Below are positions 2,876 to 63,816 of a DNA stretch of 64,000 bases, piece after piece. Each line of letters begins with the position of its first letter. The first letter of the stretch is position 1. Where the stretch lies: positions 62,001 through 126,000 of IMG/VR virus record IMGVR_UViG_3300032046_000001, one strand, 5' to 3'. The notes below the pieces were generated by a model. The model saw only the letters and a program-made list of their open reading frames with translations, was not told where the DNA came from and did not search any database. A program made the translations under genes and the position numbers.

Positions 2876-3744
2876 AAGAACGAGCTATATTATTTGGACC
2901 ATTTATTGGTGAATTAGGTTGGGAAATACTTCGATTTTCACCACTGGTTCCATATCATAAAAAACATAACCCTGATGCTAAAATTGTTGTTTTGACAAGA
3001 CCTGATAGATTTGATCTTTATGGTGAATATGCTGATATTCTTGTTTCATTAAATATAGACGGAAAATATAAAGCCGATTGTTATAGAGCAATCGGTTTTC
3101 CTATGGAAGAATATAAACAACTTACAGACCGTTTGTATAATCAGTTCTCAAAAAAATTTAATATTATAACACATATATTTCCCAATATTTCTGGAAAAAA
3201 TTTCGCTAATAAAAATCAATATTCGCAAAAACAATTGAAATACAAGTGGAAACCAAGATTGGCTAATGGTGAAGCCATCAAAAATTATATATTAAATGAT
3301 AAACAATCAATAGTACTTGCTCCAAGATTTAGAGATGGTTTACGTCGTAATTGGCCACATTGGAAAGAATTATATGATCTAATCAGTAATCACGATATCT
3401 ATAAGAAGTATAACTTTATTATTTGTGGTAAACCACCAGATTACATTCCAGATGAAAAAAATAGATTTTATGATATAAATAAAATTAAATTAAATAGTGA
3501 AATATCAACAATAGGTCTTACAATCGAGGCAATCAAAAGATCAATATTGACTGTTGGTTCACAATCAGGCATTCCAAATTTATCAATGATGATGGGGATT
3601 CCTGTATTGGAATGGGGTCATCAACGTCATCTACACGAATCTACTTATAATGTTAAAAAAACAAAAATTTATTTTTTAGATGATATGAAATACAATTTAG
3701 ATCCAAAAATAATTTTCAGTAAAATGATAGAAATTTTAAAATAA
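2872..3744 (+). CDS. GT-B-fold glycosyltransferase (GT9-like)
   Basis: GPFIGELGW and VGSQSGIPNLSMMMGIP motifs; ATG at 2872 overlaps the upstream TGA; paralog of 13430. Confidence 0.6.
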   Translation: MKERAILFGPFIGELGWEILRFSPLVPYHKKHNPDAKIVVLTRPDRFDLYGEYADILVSLNIDGKYKADCYRAIGFPMEEYKQLTDRLYNQFSKKFNIITHIFPNISGKNFANKNQYSQKQLKYKWKPRLANGEAIKNYILNDKQSIVLAPRFRDGLRRNWPHWKELYDLISNHDIYKKYNFIICGKPPDYIPDEKNRFYDINKIKLNSEISTIGLTIEAIKRSILTVGSQSGIPNLSMMMGIPVLEWGHQRHLHESTYNVKKTKIYFLDDMKYNLDPKIIFSKMIEILK

Positions 3745-4583
3745 TGAATAATCATTACTATATTTATATCTATTTAGATCCTCGTAAATCTGGAAAATAT
3801 TGCTATAGTGATATTTGTTTTTTATTTGAACCTTTATATATTGGTAAAGGAAAAGATAAACGATATAAAAGACTTGATAATAGAAATAATTTATTTAAAA
3901 ATAAAATAAATAGAATTAAAAAATGTGGATATGAATTAATTGTTTTTAAATTACACGAAAATTTAAATGAAGAACAATCATTCGAATTAGAGAAAAAATT
4001 AATAAAAGAAATTGGTAGAATTGACTTAAACACTGGTTTACTCGTCAATATGACCGATGGTGGAGAAGGAAGTAGTGGATGTGTTATTTCAGAAGAAACA
4101 AAAAATAATATTAAAAAAAGAATGATTGGTAAAAACAATCCAATGTTTGGAAAATGTGTATACGGTATGTTGGGAAAAAAACATAAAGAGGAATCAAGGA
4201 GATTAATATCTGAAAAAGCAAGCGGTAGAAAATTATCAAGAGAAATTAAGAAAAAATTCTCTAATTCAAAAATTGGTAAGTTCAATCCAATGTACAAAAA
4301 TATTATTTATTTTGATATAAATACTAAATTACCAGTAAAACAGATTGGAGAAAAAAATCCATCATCAAAGTTATCTGAAAAAGATGTTATAAATATATGG
4401 TTTGATATTTTAAATAAAAAATTAACTCAAACTGAAATAGCTAAAAAATTTAATATTGAAAAAACAACAGTGTATAATATAAAAACTGGAAGAAAATGGA
4501 AACATATATACTATAATTTAAAAATAATATTTTTGAATAAATTAATATATATTTTAAAAATAAAACATAGGGAGAGACTTTAA
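3744..4583 (+). CDS. GIY-YIG-like homing endonuclease with NUMOD3 and HTH
   Basis: YIYIYLDPR...YIGKG..R, NMTDGGEG, NPMFGK, TQTEIAKKF. Confidence 0.8.
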   Translation: MNNHYYIYIYLDPRKSGKYCYSDICFLFEPLYIGKGKDKRYKRLDNRNNLFKNKINRIKKCGYELIVFKLHENLNEEQSFELEKKLIKEIGRIDLNTGLLVNMTDGGEGSSGCVISEETKNNIKKRMIGKNNPMFGKCVYGMLGKKHKEESRRLISEKASGRKLSREIKKKFSNSKIGKFNPMYKNIIYFDINTKLPVKQIGEKNPSSKLSEKDVINIWFDILNKKLTQTEIAKKFNIEKTTVYNIKTGRKWKHIYYNLKIIFLNKLIYILKIKHRERL

Positions 4584-6764: not shown

Positions 6765-6806
6765 GACATCACTCTCCTATTTAAAAAATAGATTATTAAT
6801 CTCATA

Positions 6807-6820
6807 TATTAATATATATA
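6807..6820 (-). promoter_or_regulatory. Putative promoter motif TATATATATTAATA (copy 1)
   Basis: Exact 14-mer found four times, always heading a minus-strand gene island. Confidence 0.6.
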
Positions 6821-6885
6821 GAAGATTGTTTATTTGTGGGAACAAATTTTAAATTATAATAACAAATAAATGAGGAAATAATTGA

Positions 6886-7406: not shown

Positions 7407-7500
7407 AAGAGAGATAGAGATTGCAACTCGAAAAGAAGTAATCCGAAACTTCCTTCTCTCTTTAATATAATTCGGAAATAACAATCGGAGGTTATAAAAA
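7407..7500 (+). ncRNA. Structured leader RNA, copy 1 (three-way junction plus pseudoknot) upstream of an HNH gene
   Basis: P1 7407-14/7455-62, P2 7417-19/7427-29, P3 7435-39/7448-52; loop TCCGAA complementary to TTCGGA (7471) and to the SD region TCGGAG (7485). Confidence 0.75.
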
Positions 7501-8088
7501 ATGAAAATATTTGAAAATTTAGACTTACGAGATTTAGATAAAGAAGTTTGGAAAACTATAGAAGAATATCCAGATTATCAAATTAGTAACTTGGGTAGAG
7601 TTAAAAGTTTTAAAAATAATTGTGGTATAGATGTTAAAATATTAAAACAAATAAAAGATAAAAATGGATATCTAATTATTGATTTATATAAGAACGGAAA
7701 ATCAAAACTTAAAAAAGTTCATCGTCTTGTTTATGAAACTCATACAGGAAAATTAGAAGAAGATTATGATGCTCATCATGTAAATGAAGATAAAGAAAAT
7801 AATTTTGTTGGGAATTTAGAAACTAAAGAACATGGAAAACACTCAAAAGATCATCATAAAGATAAAATAATTTCAAAAGAAATAAGAATAAAAATGAGTA
7901 ATACAAGAAAGGAAAGATATAAAAAAGAAAATCATCCAAATTATAAAATAACAAATCAAAAAATTATTGATATCGTCGTTGATATAGAAAAAGGAGATTT
8001 AACACAAGTAGAAATAGCTAAAAAACATGGAGTTGGTCAAACAACAGTATCGTGTATAAAAACAGGAAAATTAAAATTTTATAATTAG
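7501..8088 (+). CDS. NUMOD4-HNH homing endonuclease
   Basis: WKTIEEYPDYQISNLGRVKS; VHRLV...AHHVNEDKENN; C-terminal HTH. Confidence 0.85.
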   Translation: MKIFENLDLRDLDKEVWKTIEEYPDYQISNLGRVKSFKNNCGIDVKILKQIKDKNGYLIIDLYKNGKSKLKKVHRLVYETHTGKLEEDYDAHHVNEDKENNFVGNLETKEHGKHSKDHHKDKIISKEIRIKMSNTRKERYKKENHPNYKITNQKIIDIVVDIEKGDLTQVEIAKKHGVGQTTVSCIKTGKLKFYN

Positions 8089-12528: not shown

Positions 12529-12586
12529 AATTTTATCTCCTGTGAATAGATAGAAATTAGACAAAGAAACCTATTTAAATATCATA

Positions 12587-12600
12587 TATTAATATATATA
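12587..12600 (-). promoter_or_regulatory. Putative promoter motif TATATATATTAATA (copy 2)
   Basis: Exact 14-mer heading the 8362-12528 minus-strand island. Confidence 0.6.
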
Positions 12601-12638
12601 ATTCGGAAACATTATAACCATTATTTGGGAACAAAATT

Positions 12639-12734
12639 AAGAGAGATAGAGACTTAAGCTCGAAAAGGATAACCAGTAATCCCTGCTCTCTATAATTTTA
12701 TTTACTGGTAAATTCAAAACTGGAGAATTTTAAA
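12639..12734 (+). ncRNA. Structured leader RNA, copy 2, upstream of a GIY-YIG-like gene
   Basis: Same core GAGAGATAGAG-N7-CTCGAAAAG; P3 GGAT/ATCC; loop ACCAGTA complementary to TACTGGT (12703) and ACTGGAG (12719). Confidence 0.75.
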
Positions 12735-13433
12735 ATGAATAGATATTATATTTATATTTATCTTGATCCAAGAAAACATGGAAAATATTGTTATAAAAAT
12801 ATGTGTTTTACTTTTGAACCTTTTTATGTTGGTAAAGGAAGTAATGGAAGATATAAAAATATTAGTAGAAGAAGTGATTATTTTATAAGAAAAATAAATA
12901 AAATTAAAAAATCTGGATTAGAACCAATTGTTATAAAATTATTTGAAAATTTATTTGAAAAACAATCATTAGATAAAGAAATTGAATTAATAGAAGAAAT
13001 TAGAAAAATAAATCCAGGATTTCTTGTTAATGAGACAGATGGTGGCGATGGTACAAGCGGATATATTCATACTGAAGAATCGAAAAATAAAATGAGTGAA
13101 AATCATAAGGGAAAAATAGTTTCTGAAGAAACAAGAAAGAAAATGAGTGAAAACAACAAAGGAGAAAATCATCCAAATTTTGGAAAACATCCATCAGAAG
13201 AAACAAGAAAGAAAATGAGCGAATCACAAAATGGTAAAAAACTTTCTGAAGAAACAAGGATGAAAATGAGTGAAAATCATTATAATAAAATACCGGATCA
13301 AAAAATTATCGATATTCAATCAGATATAGAAAAAGGAGATTTTACTCAAACTGAAATATCTAAAAAACATGGAGTTTGTAGAATGACGATTTGGAAAATA
13401 AAAACTGAAAAAATTATAGTGGTGAATAAATGA
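12735..13433 (+). CDS. GIY-YIG-like homing endonuclease with tandem NUMOD3 repeats and HTH
   Basis: YIYIYLDPRK, FYVGKG, NETDGGDG; four (S/T)EE(T/S)xxKMSE repeats. Confidence 0.8.
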   Translation: MNRYYIYIYLDPRKHGKYCYKNMCFTFEPFYVGKGSNGRYKNISRRSDYFIRKINKIKKSGLEPIVIKLFENLFEKQSLDKEIELIEEIRKINPGFLVNETDGGDGTSGYIHTEESKNKMSENHKGKIVSEETRKKMSENNKGENHPNFGKHPSEETRKKMSESQNGKKLSEETRMKMSENHYNKIPDQKIIDIQSDIEKGDFTQTEISKKHGVCRMTIWKIKTEKIIVVNK

Positions 13434-16811: not shown

Positions 16812-17735
16812 TTGAAAATATTATTACTCAGTAGAAATCAATTATATAAAAGAAATTGGGGAAGAGAACTATTTAAACGAGATGTGTCTAAATATCATGA
16901 TGTCAGATATTATGGAAGATCTTATCCAAATTCTCCATCTAAAAATATACAACAAATTTTAAATGAAGTTTCAAAACCAGATATTATTTTTACGCATGTA
17001 ATGTTTTATGCATCTTATTTTAATGGATATGAATCAACAAATATTCCTAAAGTTCATTTGGAAGTAGACTATGTCTTACCAAAAGATACGTATCCAGGAA
17101 CCATCTATGCCCAAAATCCATTTTATAAAAAAAGTAAATATAATTTAATATTTGGCGTCACAAAAAGAATGGTTATGGATATGAAAAATCAAAATATCGC
17201 ACCAAAAATTTTTTGGTTGCCATTTTCAGTTTCTACCGATAAATACAAAAATTTAAATTTAGAAAAAACAATTGATGTTATGTCTGTTTTTTTAGTAAAA
17301 GATTATCTATATCCAAACAGAAGATATTTACAAGAAGTAGTTCATTCACTAAAAAATAATTTAAAAATAAATGTTTTTACAAATTATGTTGTTCATGAAG
17401 AATATATTAAAAAAATAAATCAGTCAAAAATATTTATAACAAGTAATAACCTTTATAATTCATTAAATATGAAATATACAGAAGTACTAGCGTGTGGAAC
17501 ATTATTATTCGCAAATGAACCAGAAGACTTAACAGATATTAAACTTAAAGATGGAGAACATTTAATTATTTATAAAAATTGGAAAGATTTGAAATCTAAG
17601 GTTCGATATTATTTATCTCATGATAAAGAACGTGAAGAAATCGCGCAAAATGGAATGAATTTTGTGAGAGAACATCATAGTAATGAAATCAGAATAAAAG
17701 AAATGACAGAAATAATTCAAAAAGAGGTTTTATGA
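16812..17735 (+). CDS. CgeB-like GT-B glycosyltransferase (Glyco_trans_1_2)
   Basis: KYTEVLACG...DGEH...YYLSHDKEREEIAQNG; TTG start. Confidence 0.75.
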   Translation: MKILLLSRNQLYKRNWGRELFKRDVSKYHDVRYYGRSYPNSPSKNIQQILNEVSKPDIIFTHVMFYASYFNGYESTNIPKVHLEVDYVLPKDTYPGTIYAQNPFYKKSKYNLIFGVTKRMVMDMKNQNIAPKIFWLPFSVSTDKYKNLNLEKTIDVMSVFLVKDYLYPNRRYLQEVVHSLKNNLKINVFTNYVVHEEYIKKINQSKIFITSNNLYNSLNMKYTEVLACGTLLFANEPEDLTDIKLKDGEHLIIYKNWKDLKSKVRYYLSHDKEREEIAQNGMNFVREHHSNEIRIKEMTEIIQKEVL

Positions 17736-18328
17736 AAATATATGAAAATTTAGATATCAATGATTTAGAAAATGAGATTTGGAAGACTATAGATGGTTAT
17801 CCAGATTATTCGGTAAGTAATCTTGGTAGAGTTAAATCATTAAAATTTGGAAAAGAAAAAATACTAAAACAAATTAAAGATGGTGAATATTTTATAATTA
17901 ATTTATCAGTTAAAAATAAGAAATATAAAAGAACAATTCATCGTTTAGTTTTTGAAACTTTTAATGATTATAAATTAGAATCATATGAATGTGTACATCA
18001 CAAAAATGAAAGTAAGAAAAATAATTATTATAAAAATTTAGAAAAAATGACAATAAAAAATCATAATTCAATTAATAATCTAGGAAAAGTAGCATCGATA
18101 GAAACAAAAATTAAAATGAGTAAAAATCAACCTGTTAAAAAAGGAGAAAAAAATTCAAACCATAAATTAAAAAATGGAGAAGTTTGGTTAATTAAAAAAA
18201 TATTAAATTCGGATTATTATAAATCTGGAAAAATAAATCAAACTTTTATTGGAAAGATGTTTAAAGTTAATAGACAAACAATTTCAGATATAAAGTGTGG
18301 AAAAACTTGGTCTCATATAAAAATATAA
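17732..18328 (+). CDS. NUMOD4-HNH homing endonuclease
   Basis: NUMOD4, CVHHKN and HTH; sits between two paralogous GT genes. Confidence 0.85.
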   Translation: MKIYENLDINDLENEIWKTIDGYPDYSVSNLGRVKSLKFGKEKILKQIKDGEYFIINLSVKNKKYKRTIHRLVFETFNDYKLESYECVHHKNESKKNNYYKNLEKMTIKNHNSINNLGKVASIETKIKMSKNQPVKKGEKNSNHKLKNGEVWLIKKILNSDYYKSGKINQTFIGKMFKVNRQTISDIKCGKTWSHIKI

Positions 18329-27822: not shown

Positions 27823-28223
27823 GTACTACATTAAAATTATCAAATAAAGAAATTATAGATTTAAATTTGATGTGTAAAATGATGTCATTTACAATAGGAA
27901 GTTGTTACTCAACATCGAATAACTGTGTGCCATCTCTTTATACATCATTTAATTCAAATGATATAAATAATATAAAAGATTTTAATAATAAATTAATGAA
28001 TAAAATAATAGAAGAAGAATCTGATAATTTAGAAGTTCCAAAAATAGAAAAAACTTTTATAGAAGAATTAAGATATTTGATCAATCAATACAGTAAAGAA
28101 AACGGTTCAGATACTCCAGATTTTATATTATCTGAATATTTAAATGAATGTCTTGAATTATTCAATAAAATAATAAATAAAAGAGAAGATTGGTATGGAC
28201 AGAAATTAAATGAAAATTTATGA
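27819..28223 (+). CDS. Hypothetical protein
   Basis: C-terminal SKENGSDTPDFIL-type phage ORFan domain. Confidence 0.6.
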   Translation: MSTTLKLSNKEIIDLNLMCKMMSFTIGSCYSTSNNCVPSLYTSFNSNDINNIKDFNNKLMNKIIEEESDNLEVPKIEKTFIEELRYLINQYSKENGSDTPDFILSEYLNECLELFNKIINKREDWYGQKLNENL

Positions 28224-28839
28224 AAATTTAGATATTAATGATTTAGATGGAGAAGTTTGGAAAACAATAGAAGGATATCCTGATTACCAAGTTAGTAATC
28301 TTGGTAGAGTTAAAAGAATTATTGTAGATAGATGGAATCATAAATTAAAAATATTAAAACAAAATAAAAATAATAATAAATATTTTAAAGTTAGTTTATC
28401 TAAAAATGGAATATCAAAAACTAAATTGGTTCATCGTCTTGTTTTTGAAACCTTTAAAGAAAGATTAAAAGATGGGCATGATGCTCATCACATAAATGAA
28501 GATAAAGAATATAATTTTATTAATAATTTAGAATCTAAACCACACGGAAAACATATAGAAGACCATAGAAAAGGAAAGAAACTTTCAGAAGAAACTAAAA
28601 ATAGAATTAGTGAAAGTAGTGAAGGAAAAATATTATCTGAAGAAACAAAAAAGAAAATGAGTGAAAGTAAAAAAGGAGAAAATCATCCAAATTTTAAAAT
28701 AACAAATCCAAAAATCATTGGTATTCAAATAGATATAGAAAATAGAAATTTGACACAAAAAGAAATTGGTAGAAAAAACAGAATTTCCCAGTCAATGATA
28801 TCTAAAATAAAAACAGGAAAAATTAGGTATCATATATGA
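28210..28839 (+). CDS. NUMOD4-HNH homing endonuclease with NUMOD3 and HTH
   Basis: NUMOD4, AHHINEDKEYN, SEETKKKMSE. Confidence 0.85.
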   Translation: MKIYENLDINDLDGEVWKTIEGYPDYQVSNLGRVKRIIVDRWNHKLKILKQNKNNNKYFKVSLSKNGISKTKLVHRLVFETFKERLKDGHDAHHINEDKEYNFINNLESKPHGKHIEDHRKGKKLSEETKNRISESSEGKILSEETKKKMSESKKGENHPNFKITNPKIIGIQIDIENRNLTQKEIGRKNRISQSMISKIKTGKIRYHI

Positions 28840-29933
28840 AGATTGCAACAGTAATTGGAAATCGTCCACAAATAATAAAAACTTGTTTATTTTCAAATAA
28901 AGTAAGACAATTAGGAATTAAAGAAATATTGATAAATACAAATCAGCACTATGATTTTAATTTATCAGATATATTTTTCAAAGAATTAAATGTGCCACTT
29001 CCCGATTATAATTTAAATATTGGTGGTACTTCTCCATGTCAGCAAATAGGAAATGGAATAATTAAACTTGAAAAAATACTACTAAAAGAAATGCCAAGTA
29101 TACTAGTTGTATTTGGTGACACAAATTCTACATTAATCGGAGCATTAACAGCCAAAAAATTAAGTATTCCTATTGCACATATCGAGTCTGGTATGCGTTG
29201 CTTCGACAAAAATATGCCAGAAGAAACAAACAGAGTACTGACAGATCACATGTCTGATTACTTATTTTGTCCGTCTCAAGTTTCATATCAAAATTTGGCA
29301 AAAGAACATCTTATTAAACCAGATAAGACAATTATTTCTGGTGATGTTATGATCGATGTTCTCATAGAAGTTATGAAAAAGATTGATGAAGATGAAATAT
29401 TTAATAAAATTAAAAATAAATATAAAGTAGAAAAAGATAGTTATATTTTAACAACTGTTCATAGGGCAGAAAATACTGATAATATAGACAGACTAAAAAA
29501 TATAATTGAAGCTCTAATTGAAATATCAAATGATATTCCTGTTGTATTTCCAATTCACCCCAGAACAGAGAAAATTTTGAAGAATCTAAAATTAGATCTT
29601 CCTAAAAATTTAATTATTATTGATCCAGTTGGTTATAAAGACATGTTAATATTGGAGAAGAATTCCAAGTTAATTATTACAGACTCAGGCGGGATACAGA
29701 GGGAGGTGTATTTCTTTAGGAAGCCTAGTGTAATCACTAGAAATTCTACAGAGTGGGTAGAACTTATACTGTGTGGATATTCAAAATTAGTTGATACGAT
29801 TAACAAAAATGAAATTACAAGTTCTATTAAAGAATTATTAAATGATAATTATTTAAATAATAAAAATTGGGATGCTTTTTATGGAATAGGGAATAGTACA
29901 AATATTATAATAAAATATTTAATTGGAGATTAA
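28836..29933 (+). CDS. wecB: Non-hydrolysing UDP-GlcNAc 2-epimerase (WecB/WbpI family)
   Basis: GNRPQIIK, QHYD, GDTNST, HIESGMR, PEETNR, TDSGGIQRE. Confidence 0.9.
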   Translation: MKIATVIGNRPQIIKTCLFSNKVRQLGIKEILINTNQHYDFNLSDIFFKELNVPLPDYNLNIGGTSPCQQIGNGIIKLEKILLKEMPSILVVFGDTNSTLIGALTAKKLSIPIAHIESGMRCFDKNMPEETNRVLTDHMSDYLFCPSQVSYQNLAKEHLIKPDKTIISGDVMIDVLIEVMKKIDEDEIFNKIKNKYKVEKDSYILTTVHRAENTDNIDRLKNIIEALIEISNDIPVVFPIHPRTEKILKNLKLDLPKNLIIIDPVGYKDMLILEKNSKLIITDSGGIQREVYFFRKPSVITRNSTEWVELILCGYSKLVDTINKNEITSSIKELLNDNYLNNKNWDAFYGIGNSTNIIIKYLIGD

Positions 29934-30565
29934 TATTGTGGAAGTATATAAAAATTTAAATTTAAAAAATCTGGAAAATGAAATCTGGAAAGTTATAATA
30001 GACTTTCCAGATTATCAAGTTAGTAATTTAGGCAGAATTAAAAGTTTTAAACAAAATAAAATAAATGGAAAAATACGAAAACAAAAGAAAAATAAAGATG
30101 GATATTTAGAAATTGATTTATGTAAAAATGGAATATCAAAAACTAAATTAGTTCATCGTTTAGTTTATGAAAACTTCAAAGAAAAGTTAGAAGAAAAGTA
30201 TGATGCTCATCATATAAATGGGGATAGAGAATATAATTTTATTAATAATTTAGAACCTGTATTACACAGTGAACATTCAATTGGTAAAATAGTTTCAGAA
30301 GAAACCAAAAGAAAAATAAGTAAAAATCATGCTGATTTTAAAGGAAGATCTGGTATTAAAAGACCAGGAGAAGACAACCAAAATTCAAAGTTAAAAGATG
30401 GAGAAGTCTGGTTAATTAAAAAAATATTAAATTCGGATTATTATAAATCTGGAAAAATAACTCAGAAATTTATAGGAAATATGTTTGGTGTTGTTCAAAC
30501 TGTAATTTCAAAAATAAAACTTGGAAAATCATGGTCGCATATAAAATATTTAATCGGAGAATAAT
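29910..30565 (+). mobile_element. HNH cassette bounded by 25-bp direct repeats (23/25 identical)
   Basis: ATAAAATATTTAAT(T/C)GGAGA(T/A)TAAT at 29910-29934 and 30541-30565. Confidence 0.6.
29938..30564 (+). CDS. NUMOD4-HNH homing endonuclease
   Basis: NUMOD4, HNH and HTH; GTG at 29938 matches paralog starts and has SD GGAG. Confidence 0.8.
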   Translation: MEVYKNLNLKNLENEIWKVIIDFPDYQVSNLGRIKSFKQNKINGKIRKQKKNKDGYLEIDLCKNGISKTKLVHRLVYENFKEKLEEKYDAHHINGDREYNFINNLEPVLHSEHSIGKIVSEETKRKISKNHADFKGRSGIKRPGEDNQNSKLKDGEVWLIKKILNSDYYKSGKITQKFIGNMFGVVQTVISKIKLGKSWSHIKYLIGE

Positions 30566-46868: not shown

Positions 46869-47150
46869 ATGACTATTGAATTTAAAGAAAATAAAAATAC
46901 ATTAAAACTCTTAAATGAGAGACGAATGATTGAGTATATTTCAACTGTTATATCTAATAATGTTTTTAACTGTACTTTACCAGAAGCTGAATTAAAAATT
47001 ATTAATTTTATTTCAAACGTAATGAATAGGATGTATAGAAATAAAAATTTAATACCACTGGTTGAAACAGAGATTGATTATAATAGTGGTAAAATTTCAA
47101 TATGTTTTGATTTCTCAGATTATACGATGAGTTTTGATAAATATATATGA
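46869..47150 (+). CDS. Hypothetical protein, paralog of 34531
   Basis: SD AAGGAG. Confidence 0.6.
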   Translation: MTIEFKENKNTLKLLNERRMIEYISTVISNNVFNCTLPEAELKIINFISNVMNRMYRNKNLIPLVETEIDYNSGKISICFDFSDYTMSFDKYI

Positions 47151-47797
47151 AAATATTTAAAAATTTAGACTTACAAGATTTAGATGGTGAGATCTGGAAA
47201 GTTATAAAAGACTTTCCAGACTATTCTGTGAGTAATTTAGGTAGAGTTAAAAGTTTTAAATATGATAAAATAAATGGAAAAATAAGAAAACAACAAAAAA
47301 GTGATAAACATTTATTTCTTAGATTATGTAAAAATGGAAAACAAAAAAATAAAAAAATTCATATTTTAGAATTTGAATTTTTTAATAATTATAAATTAAA
47401 AGAAGATGAATGTGTTCATCATATTGATTTTAATCCAGAAAATAATATTTTAAATAATTTAATAATAATGCCAAAATCAGAGCATATTAAATTACATATG
47501 ACTGGAAAAGTATTTTCGGAAAAACATAAAAATAAAATGAGTGAAAATCATATTGGAATGAAAGGAAAATATCATTCTAAAGAAACAAAAAAATTAATGA
47601 GTATTAGTAGAATAATTAGTGGAAAACAAAAAGGTGAAAATAATCCAAGTCACAAATTAACAGAAGAACAAGTAATTCAAATTAAATTATTATTAAAAGA
47701 AGGTATATTAACTCAACAAGAAATAGCTGATATATTTGGAGTTGACAGAAAAACTATTTCGAATATAAAAACTGGAAGAACTTGGTATTATATATGA
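47147..47797 (+). CDS. NUMOD4-HNH homing endonuclease
   Basis: NUMOD4, CVHHIDFNPENN, NUMOD3, HTH; 12-bp flanking direct repeat. Confidence 0.85.
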   Translation: MKIFKNLDLQDLDGEIWKVIKDFPDYSVSNLGRVKSFKYDKINGKIRKQQKSDKHLFLRLCKNGKQKNKKIHILEFEFFNNYKLKEDECVHHIDFNPENNILNNLIIMPKSEHIKLHMTGKVFSEKHKNKMSENHIGMKGKYHSKETKKLMSISRIISGKQKGENNPSHKLTEEQVIQIKLLLKEGILTQQEIADIFGVDRKTISNIKTGRTWYYI

Positions 47798-59841: not shown

Positions 59842-62800
59842 TTGTTCAGTATTAAAAATTCAAAATTCAGTGATTGTTTTTCTTGTAAATTATTAGGTGC
59901 GCCTTCTTGTATTCTTGAGACGAACTGTAAAGATGATTTATCAAAAATTGACATAATCATAGTTGCTGAAAATCCAGGAAAAAATGAAGTTGAAGCTGGT
60001 ATACCATTAATTGGAAGATCTGGTAAAACTTTCAGAAAATATTTTGACAAGTATTTGAGAAATCTAAATTATTTAATTACGAATGTTGTGTTGTGTCAAA
60101 CTATTGATGCTGAAGGAAATACGAGTAATCCCGATGATGAGACAATTGAAAGATGTAAAAATAATCTTGTAGCACTAATAGATATCTGTAAACCTAAATT
60201 AATTTTTTGTATGGGGGCATCACCAGCAGCAGCATTCGATATTAAGAAAGTGAAAATGACTGATGTACGTGGTGAAATTATAAAATGGAATGGTTATGAT
60301 GTATTATTAACAATACATCCTTCATATGTGAATAGAAATAAAAAAACCAATCCAGAATTTGAAATGAATTTTGAAAGTGATTTTGTGAAAGCCGCGAATT
60401 TATTAGGTATTAGTGTCAAACAGAACAATGTTGAAGAAAGTTTTGTGTCAACATCAAAGGGCATACAATCATATATGATTCCTGAAAAATATTATACTGA
60501 TGAATACAGATTAATTGATATTCATTATTCATCTTTAAAAAATCAAGTGATTTATATTTTCAGAGATAAGAATGAAGTGAAATCATACTATATTGTTGAT
60601 GATCAATATTATTGTTATCAAACACCAACAAAAATTGATAATAGACCAGTTGTTGAATATGATAATTTAAATCGATTATCAATAAAATATGCCGACAGAA
60701 AAAGATTAGATTCTAAAATCACATATGAGGGTGATATTAAAATTTATGATAAACACATCATTGATTATTTTATTCACAATAAGGGTGAAGCGATTGACAC
60801 AAATTTAAATATTTACTATGTTGATATCGAAGTCGATCCTGGTGAATCAAAAGGTGTATCAAATGCCGATGAAGCTGAGTTTCCAATTAATTTAATTACT
60901 GTCAGATATAACGGACAAACTATAACGTATGTTTTGGATAATGGAACAAAAATTAACAAAATAAAAGATGTTGAACTTAAAATATTCAAAACTGAGAAAT
61001 CACTAATGATAACATTCTTGGATGATTTAGATAAATTCAATCCCGATATAATCACTGGATGGAATGTTATTAGTTTTGATATGTGTTATATTTTCAATAG
61101 ATTGCCAAAACTAAATATTAATAAAATGAGAATATCACCTTTCAAAGATGCGTATATCGATAAAGAAAGAGGATATGCGAATGTTCCTGGTTATGTTCTG
61201 ATAGATATGTGTTCATTGTACAAAGAGTTCCAATTGAAAGCCAGAGAAAATTATAAACTTGGTACAATCGCACAGGTCGAAGTTGGTGAAACAAAAATTC
61301 AACTCGAAGGTTCATTTTCAGATATGTATCGAAATAATATTAATAAATTTATCGAATATAATATTCGAGATACAATGCTCCTAGAGAAACTTGAAAATAA
61401 ATTAAAGTTCATTAAGTTATTGAATGAATTAAGAAGAATTTGTTCTGGATCTTTCAAAACATGTGAAAATACATCAGGACGTTTGGACTGTTTAGTAACA
61501 AGACATTTGAAATGTAAAAATTTCGCTTCCAGAAATTCACAAGGTCTTTCTAAAGAAAAATTTCCAGGAGCGTATGTCCAAGAACCAATGATGGGAATTC
61601 ATAATTATGTAGTTGATTTTGATTATAAATCTCTATATCCGAGTTTAGTATTGACCTACAATATTGGTATTAATACATTCTTGATGAAGTTTGAGAATTT
61701 AAGATTCGGTTATGACTTGGCGTATGACATTGATAATTTACCCGAAAAGTTCATTATTGTTAAAGATCCATTATTTAAGAATGAACGAATTGAATATACA
61801 AAAGAACAACTTTTAAATGAAATAAAAGATCAAAATCTTATTTGTACAATTAATGGTTGTTTTTATAAAAATCATAAGACCGAGCTATCATATTATAGTG
61901 AAATTCTTGAACATCTTCTGAGTTCACGAGATGTCTCCAAGAGAAAGATGTTAGAACTAAAAGAGGCGAAAGAATTTGATATGGTTGAGTTATATGATAT
62001 TCGACAGAAAACATATAAAGTTTTAGCCAATGCTCTTTATGGTATTTTAGGAACTAATATTTATAGATTCTTTAATCTTGATATGGCATCTTCGATTACA
62101 CTATCAGGACAAGAAGTTATTAAAAATTCAATTTTACATGTTGATAAGTATATGGATAATTTAAAGAGAGGAATTAAAGAAGATGTTGATATCACAATAT
62201 CAAAAGAAAATGTCTACACTGATTGGATGGATGTGAAATTGAAATATATCATTACAAGCGATACCGATTCGATATTAGCGACATTATCAAAATTTATAAA
62301 AAGTAAAGATTATGAAACATCAATTCAAGAAATGACAGATATCTGTTCGAGTATTCAAAATTTTATAAACAATCAAGTTGTTTCAAGAATAATAAATAGA
62401 CATAATGTTCCAATTGATAAAAATCGATTAAAAATTAAAAATGAATTGATGTGTTCGAGAGGTTTATTTGTTAGCAAGAAACACTACGCACTCTATGTAA
62501 TATTTCAAGAGAATAAACGTGTTGATGAAATGACAATTACTGGATTAGAAATAAAACGTCGTGATTTTTCATCATATACAAAAGATTGTATGAAAGAACT
62601 TCTTGATATTATTTTAAAATCTGAAAAAATATCATTTAATCAAATTATGTCATATGTCAAGGAGAAAGAATATGAATTCATTAAAAGAATTCGATGTGGT
62701 GATAAAACTGTTGCAAGACCAAGTGGTTGGAAGAAAAAATTAGATGAATATAAAGTTATTCCTCAAGGAATTTACGCAATGATGAACTGGAACGATTTAT

Positions 62801-63075
62801 TATATAATTCATTCGAATGTGGTGTTCGTGGATATTTATTTAAAATTAATGGCATAGATATTTCAAAGACACCAAAGAATGTTATTGAGAATTATAATAA
62901 AATATTTGTATCTGGTGGTAAAACTTTAGAAACCATATGTGTACCGGATGAAGAATCCAGACTTCCTGAATATTTTATCCCAGATATGAAAGAGATGTTA
63001 AAGTTTCACTGGATTGATCGTTACAGTCAGTTATTAGCACCAATTATTAAACCAGTTGAATTAGTAAAAATTTAA
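59842..63075 (+). CDS. Family-4 uracil-DNA glycosylase fused to a family-B DNA polymerase
   Basis: UDG4: CxxC, AENPG..E, G.SG, TNVVLC, HPS. PolB: DIE, GWN..FD, YNIRD, DYKSLYPS, K...NALYG, SDTDS, KKHY. Confidence 0.9.
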   Translation: MFSIKNSKFSDCFSCKLLGAPSCILETNCKDDLSKIDIIIVAENPGKNEVEAGIPLIGRSGKTFRKYFDKYLRNLNYLITNVVLCQTIDAEGNTSNPDDETIERCKNNLVALIDICKPKLIFCMGASPAAAFDIKKVKMTDVRGEIIKWNGYDVLLTIHPSYVNRNKKTNPEFEMNFESDFVKAANLLGISVKQNNVEESFVSTSKGIQSYMIPEKYYTDEYRLIDIHYSSLKNQVIYIFRDKNEVKSYYIVDDQYYCYQTPTKIDNRPVVEYDNLNRLSIKYADRKRLDSKITYEGDIKIYDKHIIDYFIHNKGEAIDTNLNIYYVDIEVDPGESKGVSNADEAEFPINLITVRYNGQTITYVLDNGTKINKIKDVELKIFKTEKSLMITFLDDLDKFNPDIITGWNVISFDMCYIFNRLPKLNINKMRISPFKDAYIDKERGYANVPGYVLIDMCSLYKEFQLKARENYKLGTIAQVEVGETKIQLEGSFSDMYRNNINKFIEYNIRDTMLLEKLENKLKFIKLLNELRRICSGSFKTCENTSGRLDCLVTRHLKCKNFASRNSQGLSKEKFPGAYVQEPMMGIHNYVVDFDYKSLYPSLVLTYNIGINTFLMKFENLRFGYDLAYDIDNLPEKFIIVKDPLFKNERIEYTKEQLLNEIKDQNLICTINGCFYKNHKTELSYYSEILEHLLSSRDVSKRKMLELKEAKEFDMVELYDIRQKTYKVLANALYGILGTNIYRFFNLDMASSITLSGQEVIKNSILHVDKYMDNLKRGIKEDVDITISKENVYTDWMDVKLKYIITSDTDSILATLSKFIKSKDYETSIQEMTDICSSIQNFINNQVVSRIINRHNVPIDKNRLKIKNELMCSRGLFVSKKHYALYVIFQENKRVDEMTITGLEIKRRDFSSYTKDCMKELLDIILKSEKISFNQIMSYVKEKEYEFIKRIRCGDKTVARPSGWKKKLDEYKVIPQGIYAMMNWNDLLYNSFECGVRGYLFKINGIDISKTPKNVIENYNKIFVSGGKTLETICVPDEESRLPEYFIPDMKEMLKFHWIDRYSQLLAPIIKPVELVKI

Positions 63076-63117: not shown

Positions 63118-63210
63118 AAAGAGAGATAGAGACTTAAGCTCGAAAAGAAGTATTCCGAAACTTCCTTCTCTCTTTATTATTCATTCGGAATGATTATCGG
63201 AGATTATAAA
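63118..63210 (+). ncRNA. Structured leader RNA, copy 3, upstream of an HNH gene
   Basis: P1 63118-26/63167-75; loop ATTCCGAA complementary to TTCGGAAT (63184) and to TCGGAG (63197). Confidence 0.75.
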
Positions 63211-63816
63211 ATGAAAATTTATGAAAATTTAGATTTACAAGATTTAGATGTAGAAGTTTGGAGAACTATAAAAGAATACCCAGATTATTCTATTAGTAAT
63301 TTAGGAAGGGTTAAATCATTAAAATTTGGAAAAGAAAGAGTATTAAAACAAGGTAAAAATAGTAGAAAATATTTTTGTGTTGTTTTATCTAAAAATAAAA
63401 ATAAAAAAACAAAATTAGTTCATATACTTGTTTTTGAAATTTATAATAATTACAAATTAAAATCAAATGAGTGTATTCATCACAAAGATGGGAATAAAGA
63501 AAATAATTATTATAAAAATTTAGAAAGAATGACTAAATTAGATCACTTAAGTTTACACAACAAAGGAGAAAACAATCCTATGTTTGGAAAATATTTATCT
63601 ACAAAAACAAAAATGATGATAAGTAAAAATCATTTCGATAATAAAGGTGAAAATAATCCACATCATAAACTAACAGAAGAACAAGTTATCCAGATAAAAT
63701 TATTATTAAAAGAGGGAATATTAACTCAAGAAGAAATAGCTGATATATTTGGAGTTGGTAAAATGACAATTTCAAAAATAAAGAGAGGAAAATTATGGAA
63801 ACATGTGAAAATATGA
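63211..63816 (+). CDS. NUMOD4-HNH homing endonuclease
   Basis: MKIYENLDLQDL start as in paralogs; CIHHKDGNKENN; HTH. Confidence 0.85.
   Translation: MKIYENLDLQDLDVEVWRTIKEYPDYSISNLGRVKSLKFGKERVLKQGKNSRKYFCVVLSKNKNKKTKLVHILVFEIYNNYKLKSNECIHHKDGNKENNYYKNLERMTKLDHLSLHNKGENNPMFGKYLSTKTKMMISKNHFDNKGENNPHHKLTEEQVIQIKLLLKEGILTQEEIADIFGVGKMTISKIKRGKLWKHVKI

Follow-up and report, generated by a model that had tools for sequence, protein, structure and literature searches.

The leader and its three copies

The stretch of DNA analysed here (the window, 64,000 nucleotides) covers positions 62001-126000 of the 312,420-bp viral contig IMGVR_UViG_3300032046_000001, from an uncultured giant T4-like phage. 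In front of three of its free-standing homing-endonuclease genes (HEGs) lies a leader of about 95 nucleotides (nt), made up of a 55-nt core and a 40-nt tail. The core folds as a three-way junction of helices P1, P2 and P3, and the loop of P3 is complementary to two sites in the tail, a proximal "decoy" and a site at the nuclease gene's Shine-Dalgarno sequence (SD). The parts of the three copies and the genes behind them are listed below.

7407..7503, + strand: leader copy 1, which begins with the 5′ strand of P1 and runs to the ATG of an HNH gene; identified by sequence, with a covariance-model match at 7407-7462 (74.7 bits)
7407..7414, + strand: P1 5′ strand of copy 1, AAGAGAGA, pairing with TCTCTCTT at 7455-7462
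7417..7429, + strand: P2 hairpin of copy 1, GAG-ATTGCAA-CTC, with the palindrome TTGCAA at 7421-7426 in its loop
7435..7452, + strand: P3 hairpin of copy 1, GAAGT/ACTTC, with the putative anti-SD loop AATCCGAA at 7440-7447
7471..7476, + strand: decoy of copy 1, TTCGGA, 6 bp of complementarity to the P3 loop
7485..7491, + strand: SD-proximal site of copy 1, TCGGA, which overlaps the SD GGAGG at 7487-7491 and has 5 bp with the loop
7501..8088, + strand: NUMOD4 and HNH_3 homing endonuclease gene
12639..12737, + strand: leader copy 2, which begins with P1 and runs to the ATG of a GIY-YIG gene; identified by sequence, with a covariance-model match at 12639-12692 (71 bits)
12649..12661, + strand: P2 hairpin of copy 2, GAG-ACTTAAG-CTC, with the palindrome CTTAAG at 12653-12658
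12667..12682, + strand: P3 hairpin of copy 2, GGAT/ATCC, with the loop AACCAGTA at 12671-12678
12703..12709, + strand: decoy of copy 2, TACTGGT, 7 bp with the loop
12719..12725, + strand: SD-proximal site of copy 2, ACTGG, overlapping the SD GGAG at 12722-12725
12735..13433, + strand: GIY-YIG/NUMOD3 homing endonuclease gene, its stop overlapping the start of the next gene (13430)
63119..63213, + strand: leader copy 3, from P1 to the ATG of an HNH gene; identified by sequence, with a covariance-model match at 63119-63174 (74 bits)
63129..63141, + strand: P2 hairpin of copy 3, GAG-ACTTAAG-CTC, with the palindrome CTTAAG at 63133-63138
63147..63164, + strand: P3 hairpin of copy 3, GAAGT/ACTTC, with the loop ATTCCGAA at 63152-63159
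63184..63191, + strand: decoy of copy 3, TTCGGAAT, 8 bp with the loop
63197..63202, + strand: SD-proximal site of copy 3, TCGGAG, taking in the SD GGAG at 63199-63202
63211..63816, + strand: NUMOD4, HNH_3, NUMOD3 and HTH homing endonuclease gene

An earlier note on this DNA had placed the copies at 7407, 12639 and 63118; sequence and covariance model together confirm the three sites, with the start of the third moved to 63119. The pattern AGAGAGATAGAG-N7-CTCGAAAAG has exactly three matches in the window, where none is expected from 100 dinucleotide-preserving shuffles. A covariance model built on nine copies and run on the window with filters off matched three copies at 71-75 bits, on the + strand only, and the reverse strands of the copies scored 15 bits at most. 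The letters of the P3 stems, the 8-nt loops, the decoys and the SD-proximal sites agree with that note. It had also given 45-55 nt from the end of the element to the ATG, yet the three-way junction actually stops 36-42 nt before the ATG, and the N7 of the pattern is not a neutral spacer but the P2 loop, which bears a palindrome.

Leader family and fold

Further copies were collected by pattern scans of IMG/VR and of JGI metagenomes, with patterns that demand the exact conserved blocks, followed by model searches. The family comprises at least about 41 distinct copies, 12 of which lie on the 312-kb contig and the others on at least about 15 related metagenome contigs, all of them on the sense strand and 30-50 nt upstream of HEG start codons. 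Among the 80 closest NUMOD4-HNH loci in IMG/VR, the leader was found in the nearest relatives only. A pattern scan of 185,579 species-representative genomes gave 84 matches, every one of which was rejected by the covariance model, and no cellular or prophage copy was found among these genomes at the exact pattern used. The leader family is real, and its range, as far as the searches reach, is a narrow phage clade. A looser pattern, AGAGAGATAG-N8-14-GAAAAG, was dropped, as the matches listed were mostly noise, useful solely for revealing GAT/GTC variants of P2.

In the fold, P1 has 7-8 bp (a purine strand against a pyrimidine strand), P2 3 bp and P3 4-6 bp, and the strands joining them, UA, GAAAA and CU, are near-invariant. 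The earlier note had called the junction nucleotides invariant, which is nearly so, although not strictly in the wider family, where GATAA and CAAAAA variants occur. Helix covariation was computed on the model alignment of 35 distinct sequences. Standard pairs fill 94% of the cells of helices P1-P3 and both sides have changed in 10 of the 15 pairs, statistics that none of 500 shuffles matched; when the 3′ partners were slid by 1-3 columns, pairing fell to 40-61%. The proposal of a structured RNA with a co-varying P3 is thus borne out, with compensatory changes supporting P1, P2 and P3 alike. P1 appears, for instance, as GAGATAG/CTATCTC, TTGAGAG/CTCTCAG, AGAGGGA/TCCCTCT and TTGTGAGA/TCTCACAA; the third pair of P2 is seen as G-C, U-A, A-U, U.G and C-G, with GGG/CCC in one lineage, and more than 12 different P3 stems occur in the family. 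One copy (L364:1137-1200) carries an additional small hairpin, GAATGA...TCATTC, within the linker between P1 and decoy, which is about 31 nt long there, with an 8-bp match between loop and decoy retained.

G.U pairs are present, and the reverse strand scores about 60 bits lower under the covariance model, which together indicate that the structure is that of the RNA of the sense strand. These two features and the fixed spacing to SD and ATG counter a DNA-level element such as an operator, a recombination site or an element end; the last of these, offered in the earlier note, is unlikely for features so RNA-like and strand-specific. Likewise, variable palindromes between constant flanks are a misfit for the site of a single DNA-binding protein.

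In P1, J1/2 (UA), the first two pairs of P2 and J2/3 (GAAAA), the sequence itself is conserved beyond the needs of pairing, and P3 and the loops drift freely. Such a pattern would suit an operator for an RNA-binding protein that acts in trans and comes from phage or host, perhaps a RegA-like repressor or a ribosomal protein, which would bind the junction and P1 and stabilise one of the loop pairings. T4 employs protein translational repressors as well as pseudoknot operators, and restriction to a narrow T4-like clade would be expected for a clade-specific partner. Nevertheless, no candidate protein has been identified, the palindromic P2 loop would be left unexplained unless the protein binds an RNA dimer, and the nucleases themselves are unlikely partners, as at least four unrelated families of them have the same leader. 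We consider a protein operator unlikely.

The P3 loop and its two partners

The P3 loop always contains CC and is complementary to both downstream sites, the decoy lying 6-17 nt past P1 and the SD-proximal site 13-19 nt beyond the decoy, where it overlaps the GG(A) of the SD. About 17 loop haplotypes occur, such as TCCGA, ACCAGTA, CCTTG, TCCTGA, TCCTA and TCCCTA, with TCCCA, CCTCAA, CTCTTC, CTATT, CACTTTCA and CCTTCA as further loop tracts, and each is complementary to its own decoy and to its own SD-proximal site. The mean best pairing with these own sites is 5.6 for the decoy and 5.0 for the SD, against 3.4 and 3.8 with the tails of other haplotypes, and neither observed mean was reached in any of 10000 loop-tail permutations. 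That loop, decoy and SD site change together and stay complementary, as first seen in the three window copies, therefore holds over some 17 haplotypes, and the covariation of the loop with both partners is kept across the family copies.

The two duplexes are nearly isoenergetic, with means of -7.1 kcal/mol for loop-decoy and -6.6 kcal/mol for loop-SD. In 33 of 35 copies the tract that pairs with the decoy reaches right to the 3′ end of the loop, and 1-2 nucleotides on its 5′ side stay unpaired, which is the geometry of an H-type pseudoknot; pairing with the SD usually frees one additional 3′ loop nucleotide compared with decoy pairing. As far as complementarity and covariation tell, the two loop pairings are mutually exclusive alternatives, both of them under selection.

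A junction with an H-type pseudoknot that has the SD as alternative partner is typical of translational riboswitches (SAM-II, preQ1-II). The near-invariant junction and the closeness in energy of the alternative helices would also suit a small-molecule aptamer, formed by junction and pseudoknot and responding, for example, to a nucleotide-pool or infection-state signal, in which the ligand would lock the loop onto the decoy and free the SD. Weighing against a riboswitch, there is no metabolic logic in the genes controlled, which are selfish nucleases, the element was missing from the species-representative genomes when these were scanned with the pattern used, the core of the aptamer, its P2 being 3 bp, would be very small, and no known riboswitch family matches the element. 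We therefore hold this explanation to be very improbable.

Other candidates for features around the P3 loop were rejected as well. The pyrimidine-rich 3′ strand of P1 could be imagined as an anti-SD, through wobble pairing with GGAG, yet the P1 variants CTATCTC, TCCCTCT and TCTCACAA come without a matching change in the SD. There is no start codon between decoy and SD in the three window copies that would allow an upstream open reading frame (ORF) or leader peptide, and no terminator-like site lies near the elements, as an intrinsic terminator or attenuator would require.

About 30 nt upstream of copy 2, at 12601-12609, the window also holds ATTCGGAAA, which is the decoy of the TCCGA haplotype (that of copy 1); the loop of copy 2 itself belongs to a different haplotype. 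An earlier leader may have left this site behind, or the identity may be coincidental.

The palindromic P2 loop

In the P2 loop, 1-2 nt (for the most part A or U) come first and a palindrome after them. Counting those of 4 nt or longer, there are 20 different palindromes, among them TTGCAA, CTTAAG, CGATCG, TCGCGA, TGATCA, TCTAGA, TCATGA, ATGCAT, CTATAG, TGTACA, CGTACG, TTCGAA, TGCGCA, GGCC and AGCT. A 6-nt palindrome is present in 17 of 29 distinct P2 hairpins, where composition-preserving shuffles give 1.7 on average and 9 at most in 5000, and one of at least 4 nt in 26 of the 29 (9.6 expected). Its placement is that of the pseudoknot tract in P3, flush with the 3′ side of the stem and with 1-2 nt on the 5′ side, in 18 of 24 distinct loops.

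The palindromes cannot simply extend the stem: within one molecule only the outermost pair is possible, closing a 4-nt loop, and the inner two pairs are impossible. As these inner pairs are conserved all the same, they argue for base-pairing from one molecule to another. In the cofolding prediction, two intact junctions are linked by a P2 duplex of 12 bp in which A's are bulged out. The P2 loop thus suggests RNA-RNA self-association, from which we infer dimerisation of the leader.

Downstream genes and modular behaviour

The leader precedes nuclease genes of unrelated families, as the earlier note had observed, and across the copies there are at least four such families, NUMOD4-HNH_3, GIY-YIG, phrog_374 HNH and phrog_559/3339. 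Besides NUMOD4-HNH_3 and GIY-YIG genes, those behind the leader include L147, an HNH of PF01844 type that has a treble-clef finger, L146b, a homing endonuclease that is DUF7487/Mom-like (phrog_3339), and L273, a phrog_374 HNH. The product of the gene at 12735 has two NUMOD3 motifs, a LEM-3-like GIY-YIG match of 25.1 bits, which is below the 27-bit Pfam cut-off, and a match to the PHROG homing endonuclease phrog_314; its relative L278 scores above the Pfam cut-off.

That the leader travels as a module is likewise upheld: the GIY-YIG copy at 12639 and an HNH copy (L013) are alike up to the ATG, loop haplotype included, and not past it. Moreover, P2 palindromes and P3 haplotypes are reshuffled among the copies. 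The suggestion of a nuclease-bound RNA becomes unlikely with one leader, and even one loop haplotype, standing before both HNH and GIY-YIG genes, and with so many nuclease families behind it.

A phmmer scan of all window ORFs found nine HEG paralogues. Nine HEGs in 64 kb is an unusually high load. Six of them were confirmed to lack the element, in agreement with the earlier note:

2285-2875, 3744-4583, 17732-18328, 28210-28839, 29923-30564 and 47147-47797: leaderless HEG paralogues (HNH and GIY-YIG types), each abutting or overlapping the upstream ORF

Another phage has, at the syntenic position between its homologues of ORF 6886 and ORF 8098, a leaderless HNH gene abutting the gene upstream. 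The leader is exclusively associated with uncoupled HEG starts. Leader and nuclease ORF decay independently: at L332:2482-2537 the leader has decayed in loop pairing, palindrome and junction and the HNH ORF behind it is intact, and at L358:3633-3775 the leader (L358:3719) is intact and the GIY-YIG ORF behind it breaks off after 17 codons.

These observations bear on the possibility that the leader is a static folding module, which would insulate the ribosome-binding site (RBS) of the nuclease from upstream sequence after homing, or protect the message, with the second loop site as a back-up and no regulated switching. The cassette occurs in many contexts and closure of P1 would give it a context-independent fold; the pairing with the decoy, usually the stronger and nearer one, would leave the SD free, and the leader is dispensable where translational coupling exists. 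However, the upkeep of complementarity to the SD over about 17 haplotypes would be costly and needless for an insulator, and the palindromic P2 loop would have no role. A static insulator seems to us quite improbable.

With respect to transcription, some copies lie inside operons, just past an upstream stop codon, and others 3-6 nt behind a conserved box, TGGGAACAAA(A/T), which in the window also precedes ORF 6886, where there is no leader. This box looks like a phage promoter or start region. Such positions matter to another explanation, that of a self-processing RNA (a small ribozyme that cleaves itself, or a fold recognised by an RNase), which would free the nuclease mRNA from a polycistron or set its 5′ end, perhaps as a P2 dimer. 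The copies inside operons would fit this, as would a compact three-way junction with near-invariant strands, GAAA included, plus a tertiary pseudoknot. The strand order P1-J-P2-GAAA-P3-J-P1 is also that of a type I hammerhead, and the short palindromic stem recalls the double hammerheads of avocado sunblotch viroid (ASBVd) and newt RNAs. Precedents exist in the hatchet ribozyme for a palindrome-driven dimer (PMC7357161) and in the GIR1 ribozyme for a position directly before a homing-endonuclease ORF (PMC2219692).

Nonetheless, no ribozyme family, the hammerhead models of Rfam among them, matches the leader even at E-values up to 10. The hammerhead was rejected in spite of the GAAA between P2 and P3 and the similar topology: J1/2 is only UA, there is no equivalent of C3/G8, and the CUGAUGA core and the A15.1-U16.1/H17 features are absent. 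Self-processing also leaves the covariation of the SD-proximal site with the loop unexplained, and the several copies right behind the promoter-like box need no release from an upstream message. We find self-processing distinctly unlikely.

A longer promoter-like module, composed of TATTAATATATATA, a spacer of about 20-27 nt and (T)GGGAACAAA(A/T), was noticed at 6795-6846 and 12583-12635 of the window, and also upstream of L011:8171, L150:1565, L150:10420 and L153:670. The two window modules lie in divergent intergenic regions, one before the leaderless ORF 6886 and the other 3 nt before leader copy 2, and GGGAACAAA occurs exactly in the window at those two places only. The module may mark a phage promoter or transcription start. 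At 13430-13433 the stop of the GIY-YIG gene overlaps the first gene of a + strand gene run of about 35 kb (13430 to about 48800), and control of nuclease translation could spill onto the gene at 13430 by translational coupling.

Phage background

The single 1077-aa ORF at 59842-63075 of the window encodes a uracil-DNA-glycosylase-superfamily domain fused to a family B DNA polymerase (exonuclease and polymerase), and the fusion protein is at most 30% identical to T4-like gp43 polymerases. Judged by this polymerase sequence, the host is a distant member of the T4-like phages. Immediately downstream of this ORF, leader copy 3 and its HNH gene have been inserted. A megablast search of 6.7 kb against 50,697 phage records gave no match to a close cultured relative. 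On the same 312-kb contig, close to another leader copy, there is a tRNA gene (L153:2500-2582, - strand, 52.9 bits).

Proposed mechanism

We propose that the leader is a portable cis-acting 5′ translational gate of free-standing HEGs that are not translationally coupled to an upstream gene, a reading drawn from sequence comparison to which we give about an even chance. In such a gate the P3 loop would act as an anti-SD. With the loop-decoy pseudoknot formed, the SD would be free and the nuclease translated (ON); with the loop paired to the SD-proximal site, initiation would be blocked (OFF). As the two helices are nearly isoenergetic, a small input could flip the balance. As the decoy comes first in transcription, is the nearer partner and usually pairs slightly more strongly, leaders should be ON when nascent, and an input would then be needed to reach OFF, or to stabilise ON against OFF. 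One speculative candidate for this input is the joining of two leaders through their P2 palindromes, in which a marginal 3-bp hairpin would give way to a 12-bp intermolecular helix and folding would come to depend on transcript concentration. Another, equally speculative, is a factor or ligand at the invariant junction.

Several observations speak against the gate and its inputs. The decoy duplex is the stabler one in 25 of 36 copies and the decoy is the nearer partner, and the SD-bound (OFF) state may be rarely populated unless the decoy is blocked. Pairing with the SD is short (4-6 bp) and often covers GG(A) alone. A private loop for each copy had to be rejected, since several copies of the same genome have loop or palindrome sequences in common and there is no strict orthogonality. 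Three P2 variants, GAT-CGACGG-ATC, GAG-TCGCA-CTC and GGG-TCATT-CCC, lack a palindrome of at least 4 nt, and in a cofold control the natural palindromes gain just about 3 kcal/mol over shuffled loops. The known range is narrow, with a few related phages, from a few metagenomes, among the matches listed. Finally, the leaderless HEGs and the decayed leader at L332:2482 indicate that the leader is dispensable for expression; being dispensable and tied to stand-alone initiation, not to coupled initiation, it would fit a conditional or negative control element.

A bolder form of the translational gate appears rather unlikely. The leader would have to pair with a second copy via P2 before its junction folds, tipping the anti-SD loop, and would thereby sense transcript concentration (genome copy number or infection time) and time the translation of the nuclease; alternatively, the dimer would be the active form of a new class of small self-cleaving ribozymes.

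Among the selfish genes of large phages, none are commoner than free-standing homing endonucleases, and outside T4 little is known of how their expression is controlled after landing in a foreign operon. The leader would be a self-contained, exchangeable control module, and its being common to at least four unrelated nuclease families suggests selection on it as part of the mobile cassette. It is a compact natural candidate for a three-partner switch, each partner being backed by covariation, and self-complementarity is the only conserved property of its P2 loop. Nature offers few functional RNA homodimers (PMC7357161), and the use of one by the mRNA leader of a bacterium or phage would, if true, represent a new principle of regulation. 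Its small size opens the element to direct structural and reporter work in laboratory E. coli, and it could be used as an annotation marker of HEG cassettes in metagenomic phage genomes.

Comparison with known systems

No existing Rfam family matches the leader, in line with the novelty that the earlier note had claimed. Rfam 15, with its riboswitches, ribozymes, leaders, HEARO, GIR1 and RAGATH motifs, gave no match in the window at gathering thresholds; at E-values up to 10, copy 1 obtained just chance microRNA-type matches of at most 18 bits, and in eight further loci nothing fell on the elements, so that eleven copies in total are without a family match. No description of such a leader was found in the literature searched, in which the coverage of journals was incomplete. 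The leader is a previously uncatalogued structured RNA family, and well supported as such.

The earlier note had set the leader apart from HEARO/omega RNAs and from T4-type local SD hairpins, and both comparisons came out negative here too. HEARO/omega RNAs are about 200 nt or more in length and lie beside an IscB (RuvC-HNH) gene, with a guide segment. The leader has a 55-nt core and no match to the Rfam HEARO model, and the proteins downstream of it are HEGs of 170-520 aa without RuvC or IscB domains.

In the T4-type hairpins (I-TevI, I-TevII, I-TevIII, segB, Aeh1 mobE), the RBS is contained in a local hairpin, and repression is relieved by a shorter transcript from a late promoter inside the hairpin (PMC2988022). 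Like them, the leader is a cis-acting RNA before phage homing-endonuclease genes, and it would pair with the SD region to limit translation as they do (PMC2988022). However, its SD would pair with a loop that belongs to a distal three-way junction, a decoy in competition and a palindromic loop are added, and several copies stand directly behind a promoter-like box, which would have the full leader transcribed. In minimum-free-energy folds of the full window leaders the SD lies in no conserved local stem: copy 3 leaves it unpaired, copies 1 and 2 have it in weak, non-homologous hairpins (ensemble frequencies 0.11 and 0.007; z-scores -1.7 and +0.7), and the distal P3 loop is the one element with conserved complementarity to the SD region. 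A T4-like internal late promoter was also sought; there is no consistent TATAAATA-type box from junction to SD, the linker between P1 and decoy is AU-rich, and TATAAT occurs in some copies only.

With the SAM-II and preQ1-II riboswitches the leader has in common a hairpin loop that pairs with the 3′ tail in H-type fashion, with a 5′ linker of 1-2 nt, and that bears on the accessibility of the SD. It differs from them in that the pseudoknot partner is duplicated (decoy and SD), the controlled genes are selfish nucleases, and no Rfam riboswitch matches. GIR1, which directly precedes the homing-endonuclease ORF in twin-ribozyme introns and shapes the 5′ end of its mRNA (PMC2219692), is likewise a structured RNA with junction and pseudoknots immediately upstream of such an ORF. 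Yet it is eukaryotic, about 180-190 nt long, derived from a group I intron and embedded in an intron, whereas the leader stands before free-standing genes and has no match to the GIR1 family of Rfam.

Apical loops that vary in sequence and are always self-complementary are a hallmark of dimerisation sites such as the HIV-1 dimerisation initiation site (DIS) and the 3′ untranslated region (UTR) of oskar, and the hatchet ribozyme has a palindrome-driven dimer interface (PMC7357161). The P2 loop likewise has a self-complementary apical tract of 4-6 nt that stays palindromic as its sequence varies, and it is predicted here to be convertible to an extended duplex. Unlike these sites, it belongs to a phage mRNA leader, its stem is a 3-bp arm of a three-way junction, and its unpaired flanks are on the 5′ side only.

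Coupled covariation of all partners throughout the hok family was reportedly described by Gultyaev, Franch and Gerdes in 1997. In hok mRNA, which also codes for a harmful protein, an anti-SD (ucb) can sequester the SD or itself be trapped by tac, and the trapped form is translatable (PMC9841398). Leader and hok thus share one anti-SD, putative in the leader, with two alternative partners, the SD and a trap, and coupled covariation among them. The leader differs from hok in having no small membrane toxin ORF, no long-range 5′-3′ tac/fbi pairing and no 3′ processing trigger, and its putative anti-SD is a hairpin loop in a three-way junction, with partners at most 50 nt downstream that would form pseudoknots. 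By analogy, hok is the system closest to the leader in logic, and it is not a sequence relative. The kind of control proposed here, a translational leader of selfish or toxic genes that sequesters the SD, is thus already known, and what is new is the architecture, with its junction, its duplicated pseudoknot partner and its palindromic loop.

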